A DNA stretch of 64,000 nucleotides from the NCBI GenBank assembly GCA_946965045.2, contig OX337236.1, positions 3,286,001 through 3,350,000 on the forward strand, written 5' to 3'. The position numbers were made by a program, and so were the translations under genes. This DNA is from Epithemia pelagica. Its lineage: Eukaryota; Protista; Bacillariophyta. Below are positions 1,903-34,452 of the stretch, in pieces; positions within the stretch are counted from its first letter, which is position 1, and each line of letters begins with the position of its first letter. The notes beneath the pieces are model-generated. The model saw nothing but the letters and a program-made list of their open reading frames with translations. It did not search any database and had not been told where the DNA came from.

Positions 1903-1936
1903 CAAGCTGAGTTCAGGGAGTATGTTCCTGACGTAG
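1903..1936 (+). repeat. Left terminal inverted repeat of the large ITm element
   Basis: CAAGCTGAGTTCAGGGAGTATGTTCCTGACGTAG, preceded by TA. Confidence 0.9.
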
Positions 1937-2292
1937 ACCCCTCGTAGATTTAGTACCATAAAATATAATCCTCAATAGCGTTTGGCCTGACTAGTGAATG
2001 AAAGTGTCCGACTCGTGACAACCCAGTGTCTGAATAATAAATTTTTTGTTTCGTACCGTGATGTGTGACAGCTTCCGAACGCTAGAATTCCGTCGAAAAT
2101 GATGAAAAAACGGTTGTTGTCTAACGACCATGGTGGAGGGCCATCCCAACCGTTCGAGATGTTGCCGAGCTGCATCCGGATGCTTTAGGGTTTACTTGAA
2201 CCACCCCAAATGGGGCAACATCTCAAACGGTTGGCATCATCCTCAATAATTCGATCATCCAACTCATCCCACGCAACACGGTCTACAACAGG

Positions 2293-5200
2293 ATGGAACG
2301 AAATTTTTCTGGGAAAGATATTCTTGACGTCTTTAAGACGCGATGCACCCGATCCTCGTTTGGATTCTGCAACAAGTGGATCCAAGACACCGAGATTGTA
2401 GGATACCTGAGAACTTGGTTGCCAGGACTGTCGACAATCAGATTGAATTCTCTTTTCTCTAGAGACATTGTCCTTAAACCCATTTTCGAAAATGAGGTGT
2501 CGGAACCAAACAAGTTTGGCTGGTACCGCCACAAAATCACAATCAATAAACAAAGATACACATTCTTGTATATAAGCTCCGACACAACAAAACTGCCAGT
2601 GATGTTGAACGATCACCAAGAATGGCTGGAGGCTGCAGCCGAGAATGTGATTCGGCGGTCGGGACGAGAGAAGCCAACGAAGCGAAGGAACGAAGACTCA
2701 CCAGGGGTACATGAAGGCACGGCAACTGTATCCAAGCAAGCAAGAAACACTACAACACCACCAGCAATGAAGAGCACTGCAACGCAGCAACATGGTCAAC
2801 CGCCACAAATTGGAGACAGCCCTACCGAAATGCAAACGTCACCACCTCACGACAACACAAATCAGGTGCTTGTTGGAGCAATCCAACATCCTGAATTGGC
2901 CACAGACGAAATCGGCCATGACCATCCACAGAGTTTGCCGATTGGTTTTTCAGTTTTCGAGAGTGAGATGATCCAAGGTCTATCGCAACAAATGGAAAGC
3001 GCCTGTTTTGATGAGCCAAGGAACCGTAGGCTCTTTGCCGGCAAATGCGATTCTCCAGGATCGTCAAAACGAAATCTTGAGCGATGGATAGAAACCCTTG
3101 AAAGGGCCATTTCCAACGTGGAGGCACTTCCGAATGTGGTTAACAAGGGAGACATCTTCCCCCCCAACCAGGAACAGCAACAGAGGGTACTGCTCAAGGC
3201 AACGTATTTACAACTTTCTTATAAGATAGCGTTGCTTGATATGCCACACGGTCGTACATGGCTGAACTGCATAAGCGAAGCCATAAGCAAAATGGAACAG
3301 ATTTATGGTGAAAAAGTAAAAAAACATCCCAAGACCATTGCTCGTTTTCACAGGTACTTTCGGGAAAACGACAGTTTCCCTCATCCCAACTACCACGTTC
3401 ATATTGGGAAAGAGCCATCGCCCGTCTTATTCGTTCACATACCTGAAGCAAAGGTAAAGTTTGAATGCTGGGCAAAGGAAAACCTGAGCACTCTTACAAC
3501 AGAGTCTGCTCTAATGTACCTGAGGACAACATTGCTTCCGGATATGCATACCATGATCGTACAAGAGTGCATGGATACGAATGCAACGCCAGTATCGTAC
3601 GAGGCCTTCTTGGCATCGATGAAGCTTTCCACCATTTCGCAAAGCACAGCGTGGCGATGTATTGCTGCTGCAGGGCTCGTGTTCAAGGAACACACGAAAA
3701 CATACTTCACTGATCGACACGAAAATGCTGAGAATGTTGCCCACAGAGCTGCTTTTGTCAAGAAGTACTTTAAGTGGGAAGAGCTGTCGTATCGGTGGGT
3801 GCAGCTCCCTACCGAGGATGCAATCAAACTTGAAAACGAAGGGAATGCGGGCAAGGAGAAGCTCTTGCCAAACAGCTTTGTATTTGAGTACACTGATGTA
3901 ACAACAGGCAAGCAGATGCGGGAGTACCATGTTGATGCCTTCCCAAGCGAATTTGAACGGTACATCAAACCAGAAAACACAATTCACAATGGAAACTTGT
4001 CACACAGGTTTCCCTCCGACCGCAAACCTGTCATCCTCATCGGCCAGGACGAATCGATCTACAAGCAGTTTTCCTTCTCGTCTAAGGCATGGTACACTAA
4101 AGATGGCGCAACTAAAATGCTGCCAAAGGATGATGGACATGGGATGATGATCAGCGCTTTTGTAAGCCGATCATGGGGCTTCCTTATGAACGGAAACCCG
4201 TTGCTTGCTGCGAGTCTATTTCGGATTAATGAACTCCGTCTACATGCGACACACAACAAATACGTCTCTACCGAGGCTGCAGTGAACCTCAATGGTCACA
4301 CTGCCAAGACTCCAATTACCAATGCCCAACCGTTCACTCGCTTTTTTGAATACGGAGCAGATAAAGAGGGATATTGGAATTATGAATACATGGCCTTGCA
4401 GTTGGAGGATATTGTCGATTGCCTCGTGGTCATGTTCCCCGCCCATGACTTTGTCTTTTTGTTCGACCAAAGCAGTGGTCATGGAAAACAACAATCCGAT
4501 GGGTTAAATGCTCTGAACATGAATAACGACTGGGGAGGAGCTGTTCCCAGCATGCGGGACACACAAATTATTGATCAAGCTTGCCTTGGCCCGTACAACC
4601 ATGACGACAAACTACGAGTTGGTGACGTACAACACCTCGTCTATCAGGAGAACGATCGTGGTCCAGTTGCTAAAAAAGGCCATCGTCTCAATGACGCGCA
4701 GCGTGTCGCATCGAAGAATACACACCGAACTGGTAGAAAGAAAAAGCGCAACCTCACAAAGAAGGAGCTCATGGCAAAACTTGTCCGGGTCATGGGACCT
4801 GGAATGCAACGTTCATTTCAATCGAAAAATGCTGGTGAACTACAGGACCTTTGTAAACGCTCCAACATTGCAACGGTGATTGAAGATGATGTGATCGAGG
4901 AAGGCTGGATGAATAATGCAAAAGGGCTCTTTCAAGTGTTATGGGAGCGGGGGTGGATAGACCCTAACAACATGATCAAGTACGTCAAGACAACCAGAGA
5001 TGCATGGTTGGAAGCGGATAAGAAGACTGTGAAAGAAGCCTATCAGGCGGACTACAAAAAGTACTCTATGGTTCATCTGATGAGCGAATGCTCCGATTTC
5101 AAGAACGAAAAATCTGCAATGGAGAAGCTGGCGGAAGACTTGTCTGAACGACATCGTTGCAGGATCGAGATTCTCGTATCGACCAAGTATCACTGTGAAA

Positions 5201-5559
5201 TGGCCGGTGAGGGGATCGAGTATGGCTGGGGTTACTCAAAAAAAGTCTTTCGTGCTTTCTCACTGAATGAGAAGAAAGACAAAGCTGCCTTTTTACGATG
5301 TTTGACAGCGAGCCTGAAGAAAACAACACCCGAAATCATGCGGAAAATGTCAGCAAAGGCACGTCGCTATATGCTCGCGTACTTGTTATACGATCAAAAT
5401 TCCAACAACAGCGACTATGCAGCTGCGGGCCTCTCGTATGCCGAAATTGAAAAGATGTCAAAAGCAATCAAGTGTCACCGATCCGCCTTCGACCAAGATC
5501 ATGGCTTCATCTCACGTCTCTGGAGAGAAACGCAAGGATCTGGTGCAGTAGAAACCTGA
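2293..5559 (+). CDS. DDE transposase (ITm superfamily, long D-E insertion), 1088 aa, intact
   Basis: Motifs GQDESIY (D586), FLFDQSSGH (D725), KGLFQVLWERG and TKYHCEMAGEGIEYGWG (E976, equivalent to the PxxSPELNPIE motif). Uninterrupted ORF between the TIRs. Confidence 0.85.
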   Translation: MERNFSGKDILDVFKTRCTRSSFGFCNKWIQDTEIVGYLRTWLPGLSTIRLNSLFSRDIVLKPIFENEVSEPNKFGWYRHKITINKQRYTFLYISSDTTKLPVMLNDHQEWLEAAAENVIRRSGREKPTKRRNEDSPGVHEGTATVSKQARNTTTPPAMKSTATQQHGQPPQIGDSPTEMQTSPPHDNTNQVLVGAIQHPELATDEIGHDHPQSLPIGFSVFESEMIQGLSQQMESACFDEPRNRRLFAGKCDSPGSSKRNLERWIETLERAISNVEALPNVVNKGDIFPPNQEQQQRVLLKATYLQLSYKIALLDMPHGRTWLNCISEAISKMEQIYGEKVKKHPKTIARFHRYFRENDSFPHPNYHVHIGKEPSPVLFVHIPEAKVKFECWAKENLSTLTTESALMYLRTTLLPDMHTMIVQECMDTNATPVSYEAFLASMKLSTISQSTAWRCIAAAGLVFKEHTKTYFTDRHENAENVAHRAAFVKKYFKWEELSYRWVQLPTEDAIKLENEGNAGKEKLLPNSFVFEYTDVTTGKQMREYHVDAFPSEFERYIKPENTIHNGNLSHRFPSDRKPVILIGQDESIYKQFSFSSKAWYTKDGATKMLPKDDGHGMMISAFVSRSWGFLMNGNPLLAASLFRINELRLHATHNKYVSTEAAVNLNGHTAKTPITNAQPFTRFFEYGADKEGYWNYEYMALQLEDIVDCLVVMFPAHDFVFLFDQSSGHGKQQSDGLNALNMNNDWGGAVPSMRDTQIIDQACLGPYNHDDKLRVGDVQHLVYQENDRGPVAKKGHRLNDAQRVASKNTHRTGRKKKRNLTKKELMAKLVRVMGPGMQRSFQSKNAGELQDLCKRSNIATVIEDDVIEEGWMNNAKGLFQVLWERGWIDPNNMIKYVKTTRDAWLEADKKTVKEAYQADYKKYSMVHLMSECSDFKNEKSAMEKLAEDLSERHRCRIEILVSTKYHCEMAGEGIEYGWGYSKKVFRAFSLNEKKDKAAFLRCLTASLKKTTPEIMRKMSAKARRYMLAYLLYDQNSNNSDYAAAGLSYAEIEKMSKAIKCHRSAFDQDHGFISRLWRETQGSGAVET

Positions 5560-5971
5560 TCTAATCTCCATTTATCATCAAAATGCATGTAACTTAACTA
5601 TTTATAACAGCAATCCATTTTATTGAATGTATTTCTTGTCAGTTATTGGTATCAATGATCACTTCCGTGTTGCGTGCTCGTGTTGCGTGTTGGATTATCA
5701 GTTTGTAAGTACCTCGAAAATGTGAGAGAGCGAGAAAATGGACGATTTTCGGAGCAGACCTCGCGCGAAACACGCCTCCCTCTCCGAAAACGCGCACGCA
5801 TCGCAAAACTGGCACGCAAATCCTTAAGTAACTCAGCCCACATACCAAAACTTCACCGTTTTTTAGTATGTGAGCTCAAGATTTTTTTTTTGGAATGTGG
5901 GCTGAGGGCTGAGGAGAATGCTGCGTTTCGTGTTTCTTGTGTTTCGTGTTTCGAGTTTTTGCGTTTCGACC

Positions 5972-8821
5972 ATGGGGAAACCAAGCCCTAAGAAACAGTA
6001 TTCAAAAGCAGGCGCTCAAAAACGAGACAGCATGAGTGACAAAGGAAATCTTGACGCTCTTATACTTGCAATAGATGCAGCGGAAGAGCAGTCAGCCAAA
6101 GCAGCAGCGGCGCCCGAAGCAGCAGCAGCCGCAGCACCCGAAGCAGCAGCAACAGACGAAGCGACAACAACAAAGCACCATCGGTTTCTTTCGGATCAAG
6201 ACTTTGCCGAAGTGAAGGATAAAAAGCTTGCAGATGTTCGGCGTGGCCATCCAGAGAAGGACCACAGCAAACAGTATTCGGAAACTCAAATGCGGCAGCT
6301 CCTCATCGATACGCGCACAGAGGACTACAAGAAAGGCATCGAGGAAGTGGAGAAACTCCCTTCTCGTTCTGGACGGGATCCAATCAGGACTTTCACCGAA
6401 GGCCTCAAGACGCTCTCCAAGATCAAAGACAGTGCTGTACTTGCCTGTGCTATGGGAGAGTATGTCTCACGGAAGATTTCGGCCACTTTTTCGGTCCAAG
6501 AAGCTCCAATTCGGAAGCCCGGTTCTGGCTTGCTAAAGGGGAAGATTGTGCCACTTTCGAGTGGAATGGGTCTCCCTGTCAAGAAGAACAGAAAACATAC
6601 CTTCCCGATCGGCAAGCATGTCGGTTACACATTTGCGAACAATCCGGTAGTCAAGATCTACCTTGGAAAAATGCTTCTGTTTGAGGTGAAGGAGTCAAAA
6701 CTCCCAGGCGCCGGGTTTGGCGTTTTTGCAGTTCGGACAATCAAAGATGGTGAAGTGATTGGTGCGTACACGGGAAACGACGTCACGTCTCGGACAGTTG
6801 TACCCAACGAGTACGCGATTCAGTTCGGACGTGACAATCGAAGGCTTCAAGCAGACAACGACGATCACTTCGGCATGGGGCTGCACTTAATCAACGACCA
6901 CCAACACCATCTGTACGGTACAGACAATCCACCGGATGAATCGGACGACGGTTACAACGTGAGAATCATGCCGAATCTTCTAGTTAAGGCAATCAAAAAT
7001 ATTGAGCCGGGCGACGAGCTGTCTTTGTTTTATAACCTTACGGACGAATCGCCGACGTCCTCCGAACAGGTTATCCGACCGTCGACGAAAGGTGACGACG
7101 ACGAAGACGAGGGAAAGAAACGCGGTCGACCCAGTGATGAAAATGAAGACGACGGGAAAAAAACAAAGAAGCCTGTCTTAACTTCTCCTTCTACTGTTTT
7201 CCGTCCAGTTGCTACTGTTGCTCGTCCTCCTTCTCCGCCTCCTCCGCAATACGTTTCTGAGCACTACAATTCGCCCCCTCAGCTGCCGCCGCATTATCCT
7301 CCGCAATATTATCACCATCCTCCGCCGCAGTACAATTATCCTCCGCCGCAGTACAATTACCCTCCGCCGCAGTACAATCATCATCCTCCGCCGCATTATC
7401 CTTATCCTCCGCCGCATTATCCTCATCCTCCGACGAGTCATCCTCCGCCGCAGTACCATGGACATCCTCCGTCCTACAATCAACCCAACTATGGAGGTTA
7501 CGGGGGGACTCTACCTTCATCGCTCCATCATCAGCAGCAACAACAACGCACGACCCAGCCGGTCGAAGGCTCACCCCACCTCCTTCCGAGCAATCCCATC
7601 CCACCTGCAGCACAAGCTCAACCCGTGCTCCTTCCCAGCAGTCCCGTCCTACCTGCAGCACAAGCTCAACCCGCCACTCAAGCCAATCCCAGCCCTAGTA
7701 CTGGAATGTTCGTACCAGTGGTAATGGCAGAAGATGACACGGATAGTATTTTTGAGGAGATGGAAGCGATCGATGCGAAAGCGAAGGAGAATGAGCGTTT
7801 CGAGAAAATGAAGTTGTTACATAGAGAATTGCGCTCGAAGTATTTCAAATGGCTGTACGATATTGAAAACAAAATGTATCGAGGATATTTTTTGACAACT
7901 CCGCCAGATCTCCTCGAAATGTTGGAGAATGCGTGGCACAGCACAGGCTTGGACCAGAAAGGAAAGGGCAAATTTTTCAAATCTGTTCAAGACTACACAC
8001 CAAATTTGTTGATGGCAATGATGGAACATGAGGGAATGGTGTCCAACATTCGGTACTTCGGCCACGTTAACCCCGAACATGCTGCAAAGGTCACGGCCAA
8101 TTTCAAGCAGCTGCTTGCCTCAGCTCTCTATGGGATGAACTACGCAAAAGATGATTCATTTGCGGACCAAATCAACATTCACCTTTCGTTCATGAAGACC
8201 ACAGAGGCAAAAGTTCAAGAACCTCACATCGACTTCTTGTTCCAGAGCGTAACAGGGAACATGTCCGAAGGTCCCAAAACGCCCTCCGGGAAGCAACCAA
8301 TCAAAAAGACTCGGAGAGCGAATGCAGATCTGCCACTCCGGGAACGCATGCCTTTTATTGTTTTCATGCCCCTGGCGGAGGAGGGTATGTCCGTTGAATT
8401 GTGGAGTTTCCGCGGTGAGAAGCACAAGGATTATATGAACGAGCTGGGTAAAGTGGTACATATCCCATATGGCACGTTTCTCCTCGTTCGAGGAGATACT
8501 GTCCATGCTGGTGGCTTTAAGACTGGGGAGATGGGGAATCCACGTGCACATTTCTACGTGTACCAAGGAAAAGATGGGACCGTTCACGATCCCATGCCAA
8601 AGAACACCTACAACCTTCCTTCTGGAGAAAGCAGGCTTTCCGACTACTACTTCCATGACAAAGACATCCCTGGTGTTCGCCGAAGTGGGCTCGTTGGGGT
8701 TAAGCTTTGGGTCGGGGACAAGCGTGTTTGCGTCCTAAGTGACAATCCTCGTAAGGTGCTTGTGGCCGCGAATTATAAACCTGGTAAGAAGATCGCGAGC
8801 AAAGAAGCCGATCAAACTTAG
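5972..8821 (+). CDS. Transposon cargo: SET domain + Pro/Tyr-rich region + 2OG-Fe(II) dioxygenase-like domain, 949 aa
   Basis: SET motifs LFEVKESKLPGAGFGVFA...HLIND...AIKNIEPGDELSLFY (~6677-7035). DSBH motifs QEPHIDF (8225), IPYGTFLLVRGDTVHAGG (8504) and NPRAHFYV (8543). Intact ORF from the ATG at 5972. Confidence 0.8.
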   Translation: MGKPSPKKQYSKAGAQKRDSMSDKGNLDALILAIDAAEEQSAKAAAAPEAAAAAAPEAAATDEATTTKHHRFLSDQDFAEVKDKKLADVRRGHPEKDHSKQYSETQMRQLLIDTRTEDYKKGIEEVEKLPSRSGRDPIRTFTEGLKTLSKIKDSAVLACAMGEYVSRKISATFSVQEAPIRKPGSGLLKGKIVPLSSGMGLPVKKNRKHTFPIGKHVGYTFANNPVVKIYLGKMLLFEVKESKLPGAGFGVFAVRTIKDGEVIGAYTGNDVTSRTVVPNEYAIQFGRDNRRLQADNDDHFGMGLHLINDHQHHLYGTDNPPDESDDGYNVRIMPNLLVKAIKNIEPGDELSLFYNLTDESPTSSEQVIRPSTKGDDDEDEGKKRGRPSDENEDDGKKTKKPVLTSPSTVFRPVATVARPPSPPPPQYVSEHYNSPPQLPPHYPPQYYHHPPPQYNYPPPQYNYPPPQYNHHPPPHYPYPPPHYPHPPTSHPPPQYHGHPPSYNQPNYGGYGGTLPSSLHHQQQQQRTTQPVEGSPHLLPSNPIPPAAQAQPVLLPSSPVLPAAQAQPATQANPSPSTGMFVPVVMAEDDTDSIFEEMEAIDAKAKENERFEKMKLLHRELRSKYFKWLYDIENKMYRGYFLTTPPDLLEMLENAWHSTGLDQKGKGKFFKSVQDYTPNLLMAMMEHEGMVSNIRYFGHVNPEHAAKVTANFKQLLASALYGMNYAKDDSFADQINIHLSFMKTTEAKVQEPHIDFLFQSVTGNMSEGPKTPSGKQPIKKTRRANADLPLRERMPFIVFMPLAEEGMSVELWSFRGEKHKDYMNELGKVVHIPYGTFLLVRGDTVHAGGFKTGEMGNPRAHFYVYQGKDGTVHDPMPKNTYNLPSGESRLSDYYFHDKDIPGVRRSGLVGVKLWVGDKRVCVLSDNPRKVLVAANYKPGKKIASKEADQT

Positions 8822-9347
8822 ATCTTTCCTCGTGGTGAAAGTGTGTTATTGTTGAAAAAGAATACCATGGTACGTTGAGTTGCAGTATGACATTAAGATT
8901 TATTAGTTTATTCCTTCATATTATACTTTAGTACATTGTCGTGTTTGTTTCCATGAAGTGTCGAAAACGCAAAATATGAGATAAGAATCATAGCTCGTCT
9001 GGGACCAATCACGAACTCCCTCGTACATCCATACGAGACGCGCCCGCAAACCGGGACCCAACTGCCGACACTGGGAAGCTGGATGACGACGATGACGATG
9101 ATGATGACCATGACAATCACGACCATAACGATGATGAAGAGGACAAACGGGATGAGCGATGATAGCTACAACAAGGACGACTACAATACAACGACGACAA
9201 TGATAGCCACGACAATGACGAGGACTTGGACGACGACAATAATGATAATCACAACAAGAACGACTGTAGAAGCACTACAAGTACCATGATGACAAATCGA
9301 TTCATATTTAGTGATTAAGGATACCTAAAACGTCCATCAGTAGATAT

Positions 9348-10254
9348 CTAGTACGCCTCGTCCTCATGATCCAAGTAATCGGGACCAAAAAGCCCGTTTT
9401 GCTGCGTACCGATGAAGTCTTCTTGGGTCTCGAGAAATCCATCATCGGCATACGAATCAATGGATGTCCGGTATGCACGGGAAGGATTGCTAAAGAACAA
9501 AGGAGGAGACGACAGGATGTTTTCTCCCAATGCCAGCGACTCATTCAAAGTCTGGCGAGGGTCTGTCGCTCCACTTTCCTTCACCTGTTCCTCAGCAATC
9601 CGACGCTGGAAAGCATGCTTCTGGGAGGGGGTCAGTGCGAAAGCTCGAGACGCCACCTTCGGGGAAGAAGTTACTTTCTTCGGGGTCACATAAGACTCTG
9701 GAGTCTTGTTCTCGACGTCGTCCTCCTTCTTGATCTCCTTCTCGGGCTTGCTGTCGGGCTTGTTGTCGGGCTTGCTGTTGGGTTTGGTGTCTGTGGCAGC
9801 AGAGGGCGCGTCGTGAGAAAGGGAGACTCAAAACCAACAATGAACAATCAAACTTACCTTCTTTGCCGACAGCCTCGATCGCAAGGAGCTCTGCCGCGAT
9901 ATCCGACAGGTTAGCGCATTCGACGTCCTTGTTGCTGACGAAGAACACTGGGATACCATCTTCATCCCCAATGGTGAGTTGCCACTGTTTTGCGCGCTCG
10001 TGCCACGACGAAGGACCCTCAAGGTTGAAGGTCACATGCTTCTTTGTCGAAGCGGGACACTTCGTCGTCGTCGTCTTCTTCTTCTTCGACGTTTTGTTGT
10101 CCACGGCCGTCTTTGTCTTCATTTTCTTGTTTGCCTTGTTTCCCTTGTTTCCCTTGTCGGAGGGAAATGCGGTTGTGGAGGGAGCTGCGGCGGAGTCCTC
10201 CTGCTCCTTCTTCGCAGACTCAGCTCGTTTGGTAGCACTACGCGTCTGGCGCAT
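9348..10254 (-). CDS. Transposon cargo, hypothetical Lys-rich protein; two exons (10254-9858, 9790-9348), 279 aa
   Basis: ATG at 10254 (MRQTRSATKR). The G|GTAAGT donor at 9857 and CACAG acceptor at 9791 (67-bp phase-1 intron) join two open frames; stop at 9348. Confidence 0.65.
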
Positions 10255-10425
10255 CGTTGGAAAGTGAGAACACAATAGGGATTCGTTCGTTTGATTGTTG
10301 TGTTTGTTTGTTTGATTGTTGCCCGCTCTCCGTTCTTGTGTCATCTAGGGAATCCCCCCGCGCTCATTCGTGAACAATATCGGCGCGCGCCACAAAATCA
10401 ACTTGCAGCATGAAGCAACTTCCGA

Positions 10426-10998
10426 ATGACCCGCCGTGCAATGGAACAATCAAACAGAGACGACAGGAAGAGGCAAGGAAGAAGAAACAAGATGACCAAC
10501 ATGAGGACGAAGTTCGAGTTCAACGAAGAGGATGGCCGTGAGGGTGGTGCTGGTCTCCCGTTCAAGTCGTGCTTTTATGCCAGCGATGTTTGCGCGCTCA
10601 TCGGGCCCATGTCGAGAAACAAGGACACTGGCCACAACATCGTCGACCGTGGCCATCTGCTTGTGCAGCGGGAGCTTGCGACCGACTACCTACGGATTGC
10701 AGTCTTTGACCGGGATGCAACAAGCGAGCATGAGGAACCAGCGTTGGTTGTTCCAGTTGGGTTCATTGCTCTGTCGCACCTGGACCAGGTCTCTGGAAAG
10801 ACGAGCAAGAACGGACCTCCCATGGGACGCATCCGCCTCTACACACGCTGCTCCATCAACCCTAAAGCCTGCATGGAACCCCAGGTCGTTACAATCTACA
10901 TGGGCAGCAAGGATATGGATCGCTTCAACATTTCGCTTGGTGCGATGATGCTCAAGCACCCGCTTCAAAATCTCTTCTTTAATCATCAACAAGCCTAG
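10426..10998 (+). CDS. Transposon cargo, hypothetical protein, 190 aa
   Basis: Open frame with globular beta-rich composition (GHLLVQREL...YLRIAVFD...GRIRLYTRC...VVTIYMG), divergent from the 10254 gene. No recognisable family. Confidence 0.55.
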   Translation: MTRRAMEQSNRDDRKRQGRRNKMTNMRTKFEFNEEDGREGGAGLPFKSCFYASDVCALIGPMSRNKDTGHNIVDRGHLLVQRELATDYLRIAVFDRDATSEHEEPALVVPVGFIALSHLDQVSGKTSKNGPPMGRIRLYTRCSINPKACMEPQVVTIYMGSKDMDRFNISLGAMMLKHPLQNLFFNHQQA

Positions 10999-11592
10999 AT
11001 AGTGAACAATGTAGCAGCGTTTTATGATTATCATTTGAGTAGGATCTTCATTCTCTATGAATACGATCTAATTCTATAGTTGTGTTACGTTTACCGTACA
11101 ATACATTGCGTTCAGGTACGGCTGTGTGAGTCACAACAAAGAAAAGAGCATCAATCTTTGTTGTGAACGACGCAACTTCTAGTCTAAGTTCCATATATCT
11201 AACGAGAAGAATATCAATTTTTGACGTGAACAACGCTACAAGTGTTCATAGTCTTTGTTCTATCTTCTATCATTCGATTCTACAATAGAGGTGCATTGGT
11301 TGCACCAAGTTTTGCCGTGAGTCGCCGTAGTAAATCGCGCGGCGACCACCTTCAACTAGATAAAACGACACCTACAAAACGAATGCAGCGCCGACATCGT
11401 TCTCCATGCTCAACCCATGAATGGAGAAGAGGTTCAGAGCATGGGATCATGGAGCCGTCTCCTATTTGGCAAGAGATCGGTCAAAAGGACCGTTCACCAT
11501 GGTCAATTTTTGGTAGAACGGTAGAGGCATAAATAGAAGGGCTATATTAAGGGGATGGCTCGCGCGGATTACGTAGATTTCCTACTGGAGCG

Positions 11593-11626
11593 CTACGTCA
11601 GGAACATTCTGTCTGAACTCAGCTTG
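11593..11626 (-). repeat. Right terminal inverted repeat of the large ITm element
   Basis: Reverse complement CAAGCTGAGTTCAGACAGAATGTTCCTGACGTAG, followed by TA. Confidence 0.9.
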
Positions 11627-11628
11627 TA

Positions 11629-12117
11629 GGCCGTTCCTTGATATTCTGCAAAAACAAAAATCGACACATGACATCACCTTTTTGTAGACAATTGCGCGAC
11701 ACGCCGTCCTTTGGCATTTACAAAACCAAAACCTATAACCGCACTTTTTCCCCCAAGGCCCCCAATAGTCCCCATATTCACTTTGATGATTTGATTACTA
11801 CAATTATCAAAGTAAGACATTAGGAGGACGTTCCGTCTTCCTCTTCATTGAGGTTAGGGGGACCGTTGGAGTCGAACGCGCGCCGTTCAAATCCTAAACC
11901 GTCATTTTTGTTTCTGTAGGGCCCAATGTACACTAGCAAGAAGAAAGCACTATCCCTAATGTCTGTTCAGCTTTTGCCGGCCTGCAAAAGTTGGACCCAA
12001 CTTTTGCAGCCTCAAAAGCTGAAACAGCGTCGAACCCGGATTTGACGCCATATTTCCGGGTTTTTTGTGACGTGTCACCCTCCAACTTTTGTTTTTGCAG
12101 AAGATCAAGGAACGGCC
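11629..12117. mobile_element. Tourist-like (PIF/Harbinger-type) MITE, 489 bp
   Basis: 31-bp TIRs GGCCGTTCCTTGAT(A/C)TTCTGCAAAAACAAAA at 11629-11659 and 12087-12117 (30/31). TTA at 12118-12120; the matching left TTA is at 1900-1902 once the ITm element is removed. Internal palindromes; no ORF. Confidence 0.85.
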
Positions 12118-12291
12118 TTAGTCCTCGCTTCACATTTTGTGTGGAGCCAGGCGCGTCGGTCGACGCTACCCCCCTAGCGGGTGCGCGCGGCAGCGTTAAA
12201 ATAGATTGTACCTTTTTTTTTTTTTTACACCTTTCACGTTCACGGACCGTTGGTCTCATTGTTTCTCATTCCTGTCGATGAGCACAGAAGC

Positions 12292-13374: not shown

Positions 13375-14416
13375 AGCAGGTACGATGCTTTGTTGGGCTT
13401 TTCACCAATCCTACCACGAACCAATCCAGTGTGCGCACCGACGGTCTTATCTACAGGAGTCGATTCGAACCACAGAGTATGATTCCCAAGGAATTTTTTG
13501 TTCCAAGAGTTCCTGCTGTGGCAACCACCACCAATTGGTATGTAGTGAGGGACGAGAGGATGATTGTCGTAGTAGTGTGCGGACCAGCTATTCGTTCCTC
13601 TGTTTCATGGCCAAACGTTCGTCGCATGTCACACACGGTGCTGGCAAACGGCACCCAATCTGCGGCTCCTCGTCCGTCACATGATGTGTATCCTATTCCC
13701 GCAACCACAACCACAACCAGGGGTTTTTCATGGTGCCCAACGGAATGGGACACGAAATGTCTCTTTGTCCGCAAAGGATTGGGGGGGACGGATTCCGTGC
13801 GGGCCACTAGCCACAAACAAAGACAAAGAAGGAATTGCCTCCCATTCCAGAACGACCAAACTCAATTGCCTCCCATTCCAGAACGACCAAACTCGGTGTA
13901 CCATGATGGCCCCTCGAGAGCGGTGGGCACAAACAGTATGACTGGAAACCCTTCTGCAGTCTCCTCGTTCCAAAAAAAAAGACAGCTCCAAGGTACCAAA
14001 CAAACTACACGAACATATATAGATAGCTAGATACTGTGCGACTGGGGTCCAGGCACTGTAACGACCAACAATGAGAATGGTCTTTGCCATTATTATTGAG
14101 ACAGTAGGATGGGATCTTTTTCTAGTCAAGAACGTCCCGGTAGAACCGACTACCTAGGGAGAGAGAGATCGTTGTCTTGAAAGTTTCGACAAGAGATAGA
14201 GTATCCGTGGGACAAGGGCCAAACCAAAAACGGAAGGGATAGCTGCAGTAGCAAACTCCGGATCACTTCCACGTGGAGTTGCTCCGAACGATCTTTTCTG
14301 TGGAGTACAACAACAAAAAACACATCATCTCTCTTCTTCCGTTTCTTGGTGCGAATCGACGAACCAAGCGAGGTTGTTGAGTGTCGCGCAAGGATTGGTT
14401 GGACGGAACCGAAAGG

Positions 14417-27551: not shown

Positions 27552-28021
27552 TGTTCAAAATAATGAGATATGGTCAGTGAATGAAGAAGTGCGACCAATA
27601 TTCGGAACCGGCATTCGGAAGTAGAAGATTCGACCGACAAGAGACGAGTACCATCTTACCATCGTTATTCCAAACAGAACAAATGAACCAATGGGCCGAC
27701 CAAGTCTCATTTAGAGCAACGCGTCATCAACAATAACGGCCCAAACAAGTCCAATACATAGAGAAACGAGATCCTATGGCATCCCATAACTGTCGTCGTC
27801 TAAACATTCTGACAGGCAAGAACGGGCTGGACGACGATACATAGGAAACCAAGATTGCAACAAGATCGCAAAAAGATCTCCAATCTACCTTATCCAACGG
27901 CCGATGATCCAACGGATCACAGCCATCGCTACGAGTAGAAGTAAAGACTAAGCACACAACTTAACTTTGTTTTACACGGGTTGAGCTCGTTCTTGTTGCC
28001 CACGGTAGCAGGAAAACAACA
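27552..28021 (+). repeat. 5' LTR
   Basis: TGTTCAAAATAATG...GGAAAACAACA, matches 33389-33858. Confidence 0.95.
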
Positions 28022-28036
28022 CGCTTCCTCTGTGCT
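28022..28036 (+). other. Candidate primer-binding site
   Basis: CGCTTCCTCTGTGCT directly after the 5' LTR; not TGG-type; resembles the complement of the initiator tRNA-Met D-arm. Confidence 0.4.
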
Positions 28037-28072
28037 GTTTACAGCTAAAACGTTGTCAATTCATCATCCACC

Positions 28073-29329
28073 ATGGCCGCAAATTTTGCCCTTTCACCCG
28101 CTCATGCCAACGCCAATCAAGTGATCAACTTCACGACGGCAGGAGGAGCCAAGTTTTACAAGCAAGCGATTCGTGGATTGTACGATAGTGGAGATCTCTA
28201 CGACCTTGACGCCGATGGACTCAAGACGTTCCTTGATACTCTCCAAGACAGGATCGTTGAACAAAACTGGACTTCGATCTTTGCAATTCCAGAAGCGATC
28301 GCTGCCCCCGCCGCCAATCTTCGTTTGCTCACCAGCGAGTACGGTCGTGTCTCCTTGCAACAAGTCCGTGCCTATGTTGAACACTTCAATGGAGCCAATC
28401 GTCAGACACAGAATGCATACATGGCATATACTTGCATTATGGCATCACTTACCGACGACGCCAAGGCACAGGTCAATATTTGACGCGAAGACTTCACTAT
28501 CGATGGGCGTGGTTCCGGACCCCTTCTCCTCAAGGTTTTAATCTCGTTGGCACATGTGGACACCGAAGCCACCGTTATGGTTCTACGCCAACGCCTGGCT
28601 GACCTTCACATCTATATTATGGATGTGAACGCGGACATCGCCAAGTTTAACTTCTATGTAGACGAGACTCTTCGGGCTCTCAACGCGCGCGGCGAGCAGA
28701 CGCTCGACCTTCTACCGAATCTATTTAAGGCGTACGAAACCGTGAACGACGATAACTTTCTAGAGTTCATTCGTCGCAAGAAGAACGCATATGAAGAAGG
28801 AGACAATCCAGGACTGACCCCGCGTCAACTAATGAGCGTTGCTCGCACCAAATACCAGACGCTCGTGGAACAGAAGAAATGGCAGGCTCTCTCGGCACGC
28901 GACCAAAAATTGATCGCACTTGAAGCATCCGTGAATAAACTCAAGGAACAGAAACGCAAGACTAACCCCAGTGACCAGAAGAAACAGACAAGCAAAGGGA
29001 AGACGGACAAGGCAACTGACAACGATAAGGCCTGGCTTACGGTGGGACCAAAGAGTGGTCAGTCCGAGACGAAGGAAGTCAACGGAAAAATGTGGTACTG
29101 GTGCAAGTGGCACGGAAAGTGGTCGACCAACAAAAACCACACGTCCGCAACGTGTAACGGACGTGGTCTGACAGGAGATAAGAAACGGGCCTACGACGCA
29201 GCCCACGAGAACAGCGATGGTACCACGTCTGAGAACACGGGAACGAACCCAGGACTCCGCCTTGCTAGCGCCTTAGCCGGTGCTACCCACGATGAAGACG
29301 ATGACAGCGACAACAGCACCGACGAGTGA
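28073..29329 (+). CDS. gag: Copia Gag, with one in-frame TGA at 28481-28483
   Basis: Two same-frame ORFs joined by TGA-REDFTIDGRGSGPLLLKVLISLAHVDT; C-terminal WYWCKWHGKWSTNKNHTSATC Zn-knuckle-like motif. Confidence 0.8.
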
Positions 29330-29365
29330 CAACCAAACCCGGGATGGTTCCCCGGGCTGCACGAC

Positions 29366-32300
29366 ATGATCAAGCAGCTCGTTTACACAGTATTAGTGAC
29401 GATCCTTTTATCAAGTTACACTATGCTGTGCTACGGGCTATGGTGTCCTAGGTGCTACCACCTGGAGTCAGTCCTAGACTACGTCCAAAGGCTATGCGAC
29501 TCCATGGCGACCTCTCTCGCGACCAAAATCAAAGTAAAGAAGAAACGAAGAATCGACCATGGCCGGAGACGACGGAGAACTAACTATACAGGACTCCTCC
29601 GGGCATTATGCATGGCAACGATACTGACTTCGACAACCGGACAAGTTACTCACCGAGCGGCTCACGAAGTTGGCTTTGATACCGACAGCAGGAAAGTCTT
29701 GATTGACAATTGCGCCACCGCATCAATTACGAACGACATACAAGACTGCTGCACCAAACCAATCAAAATCAAACGAAAGGTCAAGGGAGTAGCAGGAACA
29801 TATCAACCAGATATATATGAGACGACGATACGATGGGATATCGAGGACGACGACGGCAAGATCCATACGATCACGCTACCAAGGTCCTTCTACATCCCAT
29901 CGACTCCAACCAAACTGCTTTCGCCCCAACATTGGGCACAAACAGCAAAAGATATCAAACCCTTACCGAGAGGAACACGATGTGTGACATATAGCAACGC
30001 TATTGAATTGATTTGGGGGCAAGGACTCTTCAAACGGACGATTCCATTGAAACAACGCGGCTCAAATGTGGGTGAGTTTACGACTGCGCCAGGATACACA
30101 AAATACGAAGCGTTTTGCAAAAAGGCAGGCACGACAATCCAACAAGAGGACAACAAGCCCCTACTGGTTAACAATGCAAACCTCATTGAAGACGACGATG
30201 AATCCATCATGGAACGGTCTCCATCAACCATGGACCACGATGAGGGAGACGACTGGAGCATCGACGAAAATCACAAGAATCTCGACGACGAACAAAATGA
30301 ACATTATTTTCCAACAAGAGATGTACCGATGACTACCGAGTTCCTCATAGACCCCAGCGATACCGTACATGTGATTCCTAATGAAGAAGAGGTACTCCCC
30401 GAAAGTCCAACGCTCGAGTTACTCCGGACACATCATAGAATGGGTCACCTGTCGATGGCGAAAATCCAAAGCCTAGCACGACAAGGAGGACTCCCAAAGC
30501 GACTTGCAAACTGTAAGGTCCCGGTCTGTACGGCGTGTATGTTCGGGAAGGCTACGCGACGTCCCTGGCGAATCAAAGGTCACCGTGGAACACTCGATAC
30601 CATGACGTCACCGGGTCAATGTGTGTCGGTCGACCAAATGATATCAAAGACTCCGGGTTACAATGCGCATCTACGAGGGACTCCCACACGGGACAGATAT
30701 AGGGTGGCTACGGTTTTCGTCGACCACTTCTCAGGGGTAGGCTATGTACACCTTCAACGGAGTACATCAGCTAAAGATACGATCGAAGCTAAAGAACGGT
30801 TTGAAGCTTGGGCAGACACTCACGGAGTCAAGATCCGACATTACCACGCCGATAACGGCATCTTTGCCGACAATAAGTTCCGGGAAGCAGTACAAATGAA
30901 GAATCAACGATTAACTTTCAGTGGAGTTAATGCTCATTTTCAAAGTGGTATGGCCGAACGACGTATTCGAGAACTACAAGAATCAGGAAGAACAATGCTG
31001 ATACACGCCCAAAGACGCTGGCCTAGTACAGTGACAACAAACTTATGGCCCTACGCGGTGCGTTATGCCAACGACATGTTCAATGAGGCACCAATGAAGA
31101 AACACAAAGAAAAGACGCCAATGGAACTATTTACAGGTTCAACGGTAAGATTCAATACAAGACTCGCCCATACGTTCGGATGCCCAGCATACGTACTCGA
31201 CAACGAACTACAAAGCGGAACTCCAATTCCTAAATGGTCCGAACGAGCTCGAGTTGGCATTTTCTTGGGCTATTCTCCCCAACATGCAAGGACAATCGGG
31301 CTTATCTTATCACTCTCTTCCGGATTGACGTCACCCCAATTTCACGTTCAATACGATGACCAATTTGAAACCATACGCAAAAGTTTTGGAGAGGCCCAAC
31401 CAATCTCTCAATGGCAGTATAAGGCAGGGTTCACAAAATCCAAGCCACGCATGAGGGAGAATCAACCACGCGTGGAATTCGGAAGTACAACGACATCATC
31501 ACGACGTGAGACCGATGTTACGATACCCGAAGACAGGGACCAAACTAACGATGCTAACCCGCCTATGGAAGAACGAGAAACTATGCCAGAGCATGAGGGA
31601 GCTAGGCGTTCCCAACGTACTCCTCGTCGAACACAACGATATCAAGACTACTTAACTTCGCTCCAAGAACCCGAAGACGTGATCGGAGAAGTAGCTATCA
31701 CAGCTAAACCAACCGTGACAGTCAATACGGCTCAAGCTAACAGCAATCCAGATGTTATGTACTGGCATGAAGCAATGAAACAAGATGATCGAGCAGAATT
31801 CATAAGGGCAGCACAGAAAGAAGTACAAGATCATAGCGATAATGGGCTATGGGAGGTGGTCAAGCGAAAGGACATTCCTAAAGGAGCGCTAATCTCTCGA
31901 GGAGTGTGGAGTTGTGTCCGAAAGAGAAGACTAAAAACTAGAGAAGTCTACAAATGGAAATCCAGGTTGGCATATGACGGGTCCATGCAAGAAAAGGGGG
32001 TTAACTATTGGGAGACATACACTCCCGTGATTCAATGGCCCGTCGTGAGATTCATCCTGACGATGGCACTCACACAAGGATGGCACATCAAACAGGTAGA
32101 TTATGTGCTGGCATATACCCAAGCAGTCGCCGAGACTGATATGTACATGGAAGCTCCGAAAAGTTTCACCTTCGATACAAAAGGAAACCAGCGAGCAGAG
32201 GACTATGTCCTCAAGATCAAGCAAAATTACTATGGGCAGAAGCAGGGTGCCCGAGTATGGAATCAACACCTCGTGGAACGACTTAAGCAAGTCGGTTTCC

Positions 32301-33361
32301 AACAAAGTGCACACGACGAGTGCCTCTTTTACCATGGTAAATGCGTATACATTTTGTATACGGACGATTCCTTATTGTTGGGTCCCGACAAAGAAGAACT
32401 CGACCGGTTGATTGTTACAATGGAGAATAGTGGTCTGAAAATGACCTATGAAGACGGAGTCAACGATTTTCTTGGGGTCAACATTGACAGAAAAGAAGAT
32501 GGCACCATCCACTTGACTCAACCACATTTAATTGACTCAATCCTCCAAGACCTTCACCTTGCCGCAGAATCAACAAAGAAGAAAGAAACACCGGCACCAA
32601 CTACAGTACGCTTGAGACAAGACCAAGACGGGAAAGCATTTGATCACCATTTCCATTACAGGTTGGCGATCGGGAAACTCAACTTCCTGGAAAAGAGCAC
32701 GAGACCAGATATTAGTTTCGCCGTCCACCAATGTGCTAGATTTTGCGAAAACCCAAAAGCAATTCATGGGAAAGCCGTCAAACACATAGCACGTTACCTC
32801 GCCGGAACACGAAAGCAAGGAGTGATACTCAAACCCGACACCACGAAATCTTTCCAAGTATTCGCCGACGCGGACTTTGCAGGAAATTTTAACAAGCTCG
32901 ACCACCCAAACAAGGACATGGCTCGGTCTCGAACGGGATTTGTGGTCTTCTATGCAGGTTGCCCCATCCTCTGGCAATCAAAACTGCAGTCAGAGATAGC
33001 CTTATCAACCACAGAAGCAGAGATCATCAGTTTGTCGCACGCACTACGTACCGTCATTCCGTTGATGGCCATCACTCGTGAGATGAAGGATTTGGGGTTC
33101 CCTATTCTCTCTACGACGCCCAATATACACTGAAAGGCATTTGAAGATAACAGTGGTGCAGTCGAACTCGCAACGATATACAAGTACAGACCCAGAACAC
33201 GGTATCTGTGCACCAAGTTGTTCCATTTTAAATCTTTTGTGGAACGAAAAGAGATCGAGATTCACCCGTGCGCGACAGACGATCAGACCGCGGATATCTT
33301 CACTAAATCGCTCAACGAATCATCGTTCGAGAAACATCGCGAGAGTATACAAGGATGGTAA
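29366..33361 (+). CDS. pol: Copia Pol (PR-IN-RT-RNase H), with an in-frame TGA at 33131-33133 inside RNase H
   Basis: VLIDNCA protease; HHRMGH...C-x2-C integrase Zn finger; VSVD/ADNG/ERRIRE integrase core; QVDYVLAY and LYTDD RT; FADADFAG/EAE RNase H continuing in frame as KAFEDNSG...DQTADIFTK to the TAA at 33361. Confidence 0.92.
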
Positions 33362-33379
33362 CATCGACTCTACTCGGCC

Positions 33380-33388
33380 GAGAGGGAG
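33380..33388 (+). other. Polypurine tract
   Basis: GAGAGGGAG immediately before the 3' LTR TG. Confidence 0.85.
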
Positions 33389-33858
33389 TGTTCAAAATAA
33401 TGAGATATGGTCAGTGAATGAAGAAGTGCGACCAATATTCGGAACCGGCATTCGGAAGTAGAAGATTCGACCGACAAGAGACGAGTACCATCTTACCATC
33501 GTTATTCCAAACAGAACAAATGAACCAATGGGCCGACCAAGTCTCATTTAGAGCAACGCGACATCAACAATAACGGCCCAAACAAGTCCAATACATAGAG
33601 AAACGAGATCCTATGGCATCCCATAACTGTCGTCGTCTAAACATTCTGACAGGCAAGAACGGGCTGGACGACAATACATAGGAAACCAAGATTGCAACAA
33701 GATCGCAAAAAGATCTCCAATCTACCTTATCCAACGGCCGATGATCCAACGGATCACAGCCATCGCTACGAGTAGAAGTAAAGACTAAGCACACAACTTA
33801 ACTTTGTTTTACACGGGTTGAGCTCGTTCTTGTTGCCCACGGTAGCAGGAAAACAACA
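33389..33858 (+). repeat. 3' LTR
   Basis: Matches 27552-28021. Confidence 0.95.
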
Positions 33859-34452
33859 GAATGCAGGCGTCTGCTGTGAGCTAATGCAACACGGGAAGCG
33901 AGTCAGAATGGGATGAATGACATGTTCCTTCTGGTCCATCATGTCGTCAGATTCTTCTGTTTGGTACTTGTACTTGTACTTGTACTTGTGGCCTTGCTTC
34001 CTTCACTATATACCTGATGAGTGATGCCCACTCACATCATTGGATCAAGAGAGGACCACTGTCTCACTCTGTTTTGTTGTTATTGATGTGAACAGTCCGT
34101 AGGCCCAAGGCAAGAATGGTGTTCCATAAATGGTGTTGGTCGAGATGACTCAGAAACTAGGGATATCTACCCAGTGGATGTTGGATTGTCGATCTGTTGG
34201 ACCTCTTCGTCATAGGAGGACCTCTTCATCACAGATTGGGATGTCGATCTCTCTCCCTCTCGTCTCGTCGTATCTTACATACTTTTCTTGGGGTCATGAA
34301 ATCTATGTGCGATTGATTGCCCTTCATCATCGTACGCAGGACAGGCACAACTTTCCTGTCTCCACACATCACTCTCTCTCCTCTCCTCGCTGCGAAAGCT
34401 CAATTGCAAAGCTGTCATTTCTCGTCGACGTTGTTGTAAAGCGCCGTTGACC

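Follow-up and report, generated by a model that had tools for sequence, protein, structure and literature searches.

A SET-oxygenase fusion gene carried as cargo by DNA transposons of two superfamilies in the diatom Epithemia pelagica

The locus and its cargo gene

The stretch of Epithemia pelagica DNA analysed here (64,000 nt of contig OX337236.1, referred to as the window; all coordinates are window positions, and L-numbers denote other loci or contigs with which it was compared) contains a DNA transposon, element A, with a cargo gene in which a SET domain is joined to a predicted Fe(II)/2-oxoglutarate (2OG) oxygenase domain in a single polypeptide. The first-pass annotation of the window, made from the letters alone, had described the gene as a transposon-borne open reading frame (ORF) of 949 amino acids (aa), and the frame is indeed stop-free over its whole length. 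No intron needs to be assumed. An ATG further upstream, at 5918, could serve as an alternative start and would extend the product to 967 aa. The gene and its parts are the following:

5972-8821, plus strand: SET-oxygenase fusion gene, 949 uninterrupted codons
6149-6667, plus strand: conserved N-terminal region ahead of the SET domain, aa 60-232, 45% identical to a piggyBac-borne paralogue
6713-7036, plus strand: SET domain, aa 248-355, from PF00856 and a profile search of PDB sequences
7115-7132, plus strand: basic AT-hook-like motif KKRGRP, aa 382-387, read from the sequence just after the SET domain
7238-7485, plus strand: Pro/Tyr/His/Gln-rich linker of 21-nt (7-aa) repeats (repeat families D1 and D2, 21-nt spacing)
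7835-8647, plus strand: double-stranded beta-helix (DSBH) 2OG/Fe(II) oxygenase domain, aa 622-892, from an AlphaFold2 model, fold searches and 444 homologues
8225-8233, plus strand: predicted iron-binding HxD motif, H752-x-D754, from conservation in 48 sequences
8504-8506, plus strand: predicted distal iron ligand H845 (in VHAGG), invariant in 48 sequences
8543-8545, plus strand: predicted 2-oxoglutarate-binding arginine R858, 13 residues past H845, at least 90% conserved

All motifs quoted in the first-pass annotation were found in place, those of the SET part at aa 246-253 (GAGFGVFA), 305-309 (HLIND) and 349-354 (ELSLFY) and those of the oxygenase part at aa 749-754 (QEPHID), 844-848 (VHAGG) and 857-862 (PRAHFY). 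The conserved N-terminal region (aa 60-232) matched no Pfam family. The basic patch KKRGRP, which we take to be AT-hook-like, reads KKRGRS at the same position of the piggyBac-borne paralogue. The linker carries seven PPxY motifs within 7238-7456 (PPPQY five times and PPPHY twice); such motifs are classic ligands of WW domains.

The carrier: element A

Element A is a recently active, TA-flanked DNA transposon with the SET-oxygenase gene as cargo. Its features are:

1903-11626: element A, a DNA transposon of 9,724 bp with a Tc1/mariner-like TA target, delimited by copies with shared ends and unrelated flanks
1901-1902: left TA flank (target-site duplication or target dinucleotide), a TA before CAAGCTGAGTTCAG at five of five loci
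11627-11628: right TA flank, a TA after CTGAACTCAGCTTG at five of five loci
1903-1947, plus strand: left terminal inverted repeat (repeat pair I1, with the right end)
11582-11626, minus strand: right terminal inverted repeat (repeat pair I1)
2293-5559, plus strand: transposase ORF, 1,088 aa, of a diatom-rich family of transposases of about 1,000 aa probably related to DDE_3 (Tc1/IS630)
9592-11194, minus strand: further conserved ORFs of 250, 68, 98 and 48 aa, with the same calls in L003-L007, L015 and L016

Five loci of one assembly encode exactly this fusion protein, the one on the contig of the window and the four loci L003-L006. The latter four are at least 99.93% identical to element A over 9,729 bp, and their homology to it stops abruptly at 1898-1901 on the left and at 11629-11632 on the right, where the boundary reads TA followed by CAAGCTG at one end and CAGCTTG followed by TA at the other. 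Beyond these points both the flanks and the neighbouring genes are unrelated. The near identity of five loci with TA flanks in unrelated surroundings is the reason for considering element A recently active. The inverted repeats pair 1901-1947 with 11582-11628, that is 47 nt including the TA or 45 nt without it, and are 83% complementary; the data fit equally the TA as a part of the inverted repeat and the TA as a duplication, and each fits a TA-targeting element. Three other copies, more diverged at 96.4-97.6% aa identity, have the same layout and keep the cargo ORF whole (948-970 aa) behind the transposase, so that the fusion ORF is intact at all eight element A loci examined, that of the window included. 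The description of the gene as transposon-borne is thus upheld by the terminal inverted repeats, the TA flanks and the four further near-identical copies elsewhere, and the co-occurrence of cargo gene and transposase, which had been proposed as a check, was found in the copies of element A.

The transposase itself had no direct match in Pfam or in a sequence search of the PDB. Its probable assignment comes from 77 homologues, several of them named from the diatom Fragilaria crotonensis; many of their clusters are multi-copy, and most lie on contigs of 3-5 kb. The Atlas, by features as well as by structures, leads to DDE_3 clusters, and two of the distant homologues carry Pfam marks, the most distant one PF13358 (DDE_3) and another one PF13592.

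For the ORFs on the minus strand at 9592-11194 no Pfam family reached its cut-off; together they may represent a third, spliced cargo gene. At L014 (1-14847) two RVT_2 (Copia-type) ORFs flank a copy of element A in which the transposase is split into 543 and 547 aa and the cargo ORF is intact at 948 aa. At the right TA of element A starts a 32-nt inverted repeat pair (11628-12118, 97% complementary, 427 nt apart), perhaps a small element resembling a miniature inverted-repeat transposable element beside which element A inserted.

The same fusion on a piggyBac-like element and in a third lineage

The homologue closest to the oxygenase domain was found in the same assembly. It is 45% identical and is preceded by a SET ORF of 385 aa, also 45% identical; at another locus the paralogue is a single ORF of 921 aa. 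The paralogue is colinear with the fusion protein throughout, at 38-45% identity, and shares the SET and the oxygenase motifs. The SET half at L001 aligned with the fusion protein at E 9e-79 in BLASTP; tblastn missed this half, and the BLASTP result was used. When the SET half was used as a query for homologues, the only matches were these same-genome paralogues.

The paralogue resides on a different transposon, the piggyBac-like element B, of which two copies 98% identical to each other were compared (L008:1897-16218 and L001:744-12900). Element B is about 14.3 kb long at L008, where both ends are in view. Its inverted ends of about 2.5 kb are built of 193-bp tandem repeats, and its 4-bp flanks, CTAG in one copy and CTAT in the second, differ from the TTAA usual for piggyBac. 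The transposase ORF, split into three calls, is of the piggyBac type (DDE_Tnp_1_7, PF13843, at 37.7 bits with the cut-off at 22.4). The other ORFs of element A that were tested with tblastn had no match at the element B locus.

A third and older lineage, L017, has the same gene order as element A, with 56% identity in the transposase, 85% in the SET part and 73% in the oxygenase part; there the cargo gene has decayed into three separate ORFs. The fused gene is therefore resident in three lineages and two transposon superfamilies. It lies inside an autonomous element and has been kept across lineages, as would be expected of transposon-encoded anti-silencing factors such as VANC and the TET/JBP cargo discussed below. 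Among 48 oxygenase domains, a maximum-likelihood tree places the copies of elements A and B as sisters (support 100/98). Their sister position and their colinear homology over the full protein point to a single origin of the fusion and a later spread between superfamilies.

The oxygenase domain

The C-terminal domain is predicted to be a 2OG/Fe(II) oxygenase of DSBH fold whose cofactor site is complete; its family has no Pfam model. It contains a basic loop at aa 765-790. An AlphaFold2 model based on an alignment of 48 members was confident (predicted local distance difference test, pLDDT, 87.3; predicted template modelling score, pTM, 0.88). An exhaustive profile search at E <=1e-3 recovered 444 cluster representatives, and 41 of these also passed E <=1e-30. 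In the alignment of 48 members, which reach down to 20% identity, no substitution occurs at Q749, H752, P800, H845, G847 or H860, and conservation at D754 and R858 is at least 90%. The HxD...H...R pattern from which the first-pass annotation had called such a dioxygenase is thus a property of the family. R858 falls within the spacing of 10-14 residues after the distal histidine, and from the usual HxD...H...R layout it would bind the C5-carboxylate of 2-oxoglutarate.

Searches with the model led to the same fold. Foldseek gave 365 matches in the PDB at E <=1e-3, and the best 50 of these 365 were all Fe(II)/2OG oxygenases; against the Swiss-Prot models it returned those oxygenase families again together with two unnamed mycobacterial proteins. 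Re-scoring with VIA-align yielded Z values of 12.0-12.7 for AsqJ, OkaE, AndA, FtmOx1, SnoN and PrhA (AsqJ, OkaE and AndA at 12.6-12.7), and 11.8 for PHD2. In a structure search independent of Foldseek, covering 48,161 chains, we considered the best 50 rows, the lowest Z among them being 9.2. PhyH-like enzymes stood highest (Z 12.6), followed by bacterial proteins without assigned function and prolyl hydroxylases (11.6), and then by ALKBH1 (10.3), OGFOD1/Tpa1 (10.1-10.2), FTO (9.9), T7H (9.8) and AlkB (9.6). All of these best 50 have a DSBH of the 2OG oxygenase type except vaccinia C16 (Z 11.6) and a DUF4867 protein (Z 9.8). Model, fold searches and conserved residues together bear out the earlier assignment, and the nearest folds appear to be PhyH-like enzymes and then prolyl hydroxylases.

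At the sequence level the domain is isolated. No Pfam family matched it even at E 10, including JmjC, TET/JBP, 2OG-FeII_Oxy_2, PhyH (PF05721) and the prolyl 4-hydroxylase (P4H) families, and 58 members of the oxygenase family gave nothing but one Med26 domain. The sole link is FtmOx1, a weak profile match (E 0.075) in which VHAGG..GNPR aligns with VVHAGG..GKPR and H845 falls on residue 205. In FtmOx1, His205 is an iron ligand.

JmjC and TET/JBP chains were absent from the best 50 rows of the Foldseek search of the PDB, of the VIA-align re-scoring and of the Foldseek-independent search. We have set aside JmjC, TET/JBP and AlkB identities for the domain on the strength of the fold ranking and the lack of profile matches; ALKBH1, FTO and AlkB score below the PhyH-like enzymes and the prolyl hydroxylases.

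The SET domain

The SET call of the first-pass annotation was likewise supported. PF00856 matched over its full length (model positions 1-105 of 105) at 26.7 bits against a cut-off of 22.4, and when a profile of the SET region and its paralogues was run against all PDB sequences, SET/PR chains ranked first, led by the PR domain of MECOM (E 6.6e-5). Weaker matches in the same search were PRDM16, EZH2, PRDM12 and MLL1, along with three non-significant receptor-fusion rows (E >2). The closest sequence matches are PR domains (MECOM, PRDM16, PRDM12). The GxG motif, the asparagine of the NH motif and the C-terminal tyrosine of ELxLFY are identical in five of five aligned sequences from both transposon families. 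We therefore accept the domain as SET/PR-type; its catalytic competence is a prediction.

Relatives outside transposons

The oxygenase family extends beyond transposons. One distant member has the same, host-like gene neighbourhood in three samples. Another, P0023 (L013:8001-9572), lies between MutS and PP2C genes and possesses a TFIIS-N/Med26 domain (E 3e-12), a possible sign that the family's host members have a role in transcription. A further distant homologue lies among hydrolase and AAA genes. Because distant members sit among ordinary host genes, the oxygenase domain was probably recruited from a host family. A closer member on a 4.9-kb metagenome contig (L002:610-4248) is 732 aa long and combines the oxygenase domain with a different, Cys-rich N-terminus. 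The gene follows a weakly Ulp1-protease-like ORF (PF02902 at 19.5 bits, under the cut-off of 20.7), and the contig may represent another mobile element.

No non-transposon copy of the fusion turned up among 5.8 billion proteins in a search that depends on shared words. The expectation that homologues are linked to transposable elements therefore holds for the fused gene, found only on transposons and in three lineages, but not for the distant oxygenase homologues, which lie in the company of ordinary-looking host genes.

Selection and exchange

The ratio of non-synonymous to synonymous substitution rates (dN/dS) among recent copies was 0.56-0.74 overall and 0.06-0.13 in the oxygenase part, where it rests on 0-4 substitutions. 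Measured against the decayed copy L017, SET core, oxygenase and transposase had ratios of 0.49, 0.66 and 0.33, respectively. These ratios are weak support for constraint. More telling is that long ORFs and catalytic motifs have been kept at 38-45% identity in two superfamilies.

The synonymous divergence between element A (2293-8821) and L017 (4265-10949) was 0.13-0.23 in the cargo gene and 0.89 in the transposase. Since the divergence of the cargo is so far below that of the transposase, it suggests that the cargo was swapped between the two lineages by recombination after their transposases had diverged.

Possible function of the fusion protein

It might be asked what a transposon would gain from such a gene. 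We consider it about evenly balanced whether the cargo gene encodes a divergent SET domain and a PhyH-like oxygenase that modify chromatin or other nuclear proteins to the benefit of the element. In such a protein the N-terminal region and a divergent SET/PR-type lysine-methyltransferase domain would be held in one polypeptide with a PhyH-like Fe(II)/2-oxoglutarate oxygenase with its HxD...H...R site, connected by the basic AT-hook-like patch and then the disordered Pro/Tyr/His-rich linker. Both domains would be catalytic. The basic N-terminus and the KKRGRP patch suggest a nuclear protein, and the family member with TFIIS-N/Med26, a nuclear transcription module, is consistent with a link to the nucleus and to transcription. 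There the protein might alter chromatin or other nuclear proteins to the advantage of the element; a counter to host silencing, plausible by analogy, would be one example. For the oxygenase, hydroxylation of a protein side chain or of a small substrate would be likelier than demethylation of lysine or oxidation of 5-methylcytosine (5mC). Within a single genome the same fusion has been retained by elements of two unrelated transposase superfamilies, which argues that the cargo serves transposons generally rather than one particular element.

Several observations weigh against this reading. The closest structural neighbours of the oxygenase act on small molecules and have no direct link to chromatin, and the distant homologues in host-like contexts indicate that the domain is not specific to transposons. 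The dN/dS values are just moderately below 1 and are derived from few substitutions. The sequence occurs in three sequencing runs only, and these resemble DNA assemblies, with contigs of up to 509 kb and the element fragmented at very high word depth. As to the SET part, the NHxC motif reads NDH, the asparagine being kept and the canonical histidine replaced by aspartate, as befits a divergent SET domain; the SET domain of the piggyBac-borne paralogue scores 17.9-18.2 bits, under the Pfam cut-off; and the AlphaFold2 model of the N-terminal/SET half, built from an alignment of five sequences only, reached a pLDDT of 32.5. The SET part could thus be a non-catalytic, PR-like module.

If the latter were true, the SET part would be a catalytically dead binding module and the oxygenase the sole enzyme. 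The PR domains as best sequence matches, the NDH motif and the low score of the paralogue favour this possibility, but the identity of the GxG, of the asparagine and of the tyrosine across both families speaks against it, and PR domains such as those of PRDM9 and of MECOM/PRDM16 are reported to be active. We regard a dead SET part as unlikely, though deserving of serious weight. It is improbable to a somewhat greater degree that the gene is a passive passenger, that is, a host gene captured by the transposon in the manner of Pack-type elements and of no service to it. A host source does exist in the distant oxygenase homologues, and dN/dS values of 0.5-0.7 do not amount to strong constraint. 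A mere passenger would not, however, be expected to persist as the same fusion in three lineages of two unrelated superfamilies, with intact ORFs of 921-970 aa and catalytic motifs kept at 38-45% identity, and the shared-word search of 5.8 billion proteins revealed no fusion outside transposons.

The remaining alternatives concern the substrate of the oxygenase. It may be a protein hydroxylase directed at proline or another residue of a host nuclear factor or of its own PPxY linker, with the SET domain sharing the target or serving to dock. The Z values of a Trichoplax PHD, a Pseudomonas P4H and PHD2 (11.6-11.8) lie just below the top value of 12.6, and a proline-rich repeat linker is present in both paralogues, though with a different sequence in each. 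On the other hand the Z values are closely spaced across 2OG subfamilies, so that structure does not discriminate between them, and no P4H family matches at the sequence level; in this specific form we consider the proposal no likelier than the capture of a passenger. The first-pass annotation had proposed a candidate writer/eraser module; in a true pair of this kind the oxygenase would remove methyl groups from lysine, 5mC or N-methylated nucleic acid in concert with the SET domain. Fusions of JmjC and SET domains are on record among host proteins (Iyer et al. 2010, PMC2938197), chains of the AlkB family share the fold (Z 9.6-10.3) and fungal transposons carry TET/JBP genes. Nevertheless, neither JmjC nor TET/JBP appeared among the best 50 rows with or without Foldseek, no JmjC, TET/JBP or 2OG-FeII_Oxy_2 profile matched at E 10, and the best neighbours are PhyH-like. 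Because the fold ranking places PhyH-like enzymes and prolyl hydroxylases above JmjC, TET/JBP and AlkB, the eraser has found no specific support; we think a true writer/eraser pair very improbable, and a protein hydroxylase at least as likely as an eraser.

A bolder version of the role in chromatin or nuclear protein modification would have the C-terminal domain represent an undescribed eukaryotic 2OG/Fe(II) family that acts on chromatin or transcription, the fusion to SET being a self-contained counter-silencing module of two enzymes, neither JmjC nor TET, that hops between superfamilies and through which transposons would rewrite epigenetic marks of the host. We would call this version highly doubtful, if a little less so than the writer/eraser pair.

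Other features of the window

Away from element A, a 31-nt unit at 13833-13894 is duplicated exactly in tandem, and over a region of about 6 kb (28000-34000) the AT skew is strongly positive (0.18-0.25).

Comparison with known systems

In structure the oxygenase domain resembles the PhyH-like enzymes AsqJ, AndA, FtmOx1, SnoN and KanJ (Z 12-12.7 over about 195 residues), with which it shares the HxD...H triad, and its VHAGG..G.PR stretch aligns with FtmOx1. It differs from them in sequence (8-15% identity, no Pfam PhyH match), and AsqJ and its like are stand-alone enzymes for tailoring secondary metabolites. The combination of SET with a mariner-type transposon recalls SETMAR (Metnase), a domesticated host gene of primates that joins SET to the Hsmar1 mariner transposase itself; here, by contrast, the SET domain is encoded apart from the transposase, in a cargo gene of an element that is still active.

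Transposons with chromatin-type enzymes of their own are rare, and the published SET and 2OG cargo, in red-algal Plavaka, oomycete HarbingerS, Helitrons and the fungal TET/JBP elements, consists of separate genes. The closest parallel by description is provided by the accessory genes of Plavaka elements in the red alga Bostrychia. PAG2 combines an N6-adenine methylase with SET, PAG3 joins a ParB-like domain to a putative 2OG oxygenase whose best HHpred hit is PhyH-like (PHYHD1, 2OPW), and both genes move between transposon families (bioRxiv 10.1101/2025.02.11.637652). There, as in Epithemia, SET and a PhyH-like 2OG oxygenase are the cargo of algal DNA transposons and cross superfamilies. In Epithemia they form one polypeptide instead of two genes, the N6-methylase and ParB domains are missing, and the carriers are Tc1/mariner-like and piggyBac-like elements rather than Plavaka, Mutator and Zisupton.

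In Phytophthora, another stramenopile, HarbingerS and MuDR transposons encode SET (Kojima & Jurka 2014, in PMC12730594). By description, these too are DNA transposons with a gene resembling SET histone methyltransferases, but they belong to other superfamilies, and that account describes no oxygenase domain in them. TET/JBP genes occur in fungal DNA transposons of the KDZ/Plavaka, Zisupton, IS3EU, EnSpm and Helitron groups (Kojima 2025, PMC12730594); there, as here, a 2OG/Fe(II) oxygenase has been passed between transposon lineages and counter-silencing has been proposed. The present domain, by contrast, resembles TET/JBP neither in the fold ranking nor in sequence, and it is joined to SET.

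Anti-silencing has been established experimentally for VANC, a sequence-specific DNA-binding protein of the Arabidopsis VANDAL (MuDR) elements (as cited in PMC12730594 and in the Bostrychia preprint). Like VANC the fusion protein is a transposon-encoded accessory protein, although self-protection from silencing would apply to it by analogy only; VANC is not known to have a SET or an oxygenase domain. For SET and 2OG cargo comparable to that of element A, anti-silencing has been proposed in published work (PMC12730594; bioRxiv 10.1101/2025.02.11.637652).

In literature searches we found no report of SET and a PhyH-like oxygenase in one polypeptide, nor of a SET-oxygenase fusion on Tc1/mariner-like and piggyBac-like elements or in a diatom. 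The gene also draws attention to an oxygenase family of 444 representatives without a Pfam model, and if the host can be transformed, the system could be used to test directly the effect of a transposon-encoded enzyme on silencing. Compared with the systems described above, transposon-borne SET genes and 2OG oxygenases were each known separately; what appears to be new in Epithemia is that both are fused in one protein.

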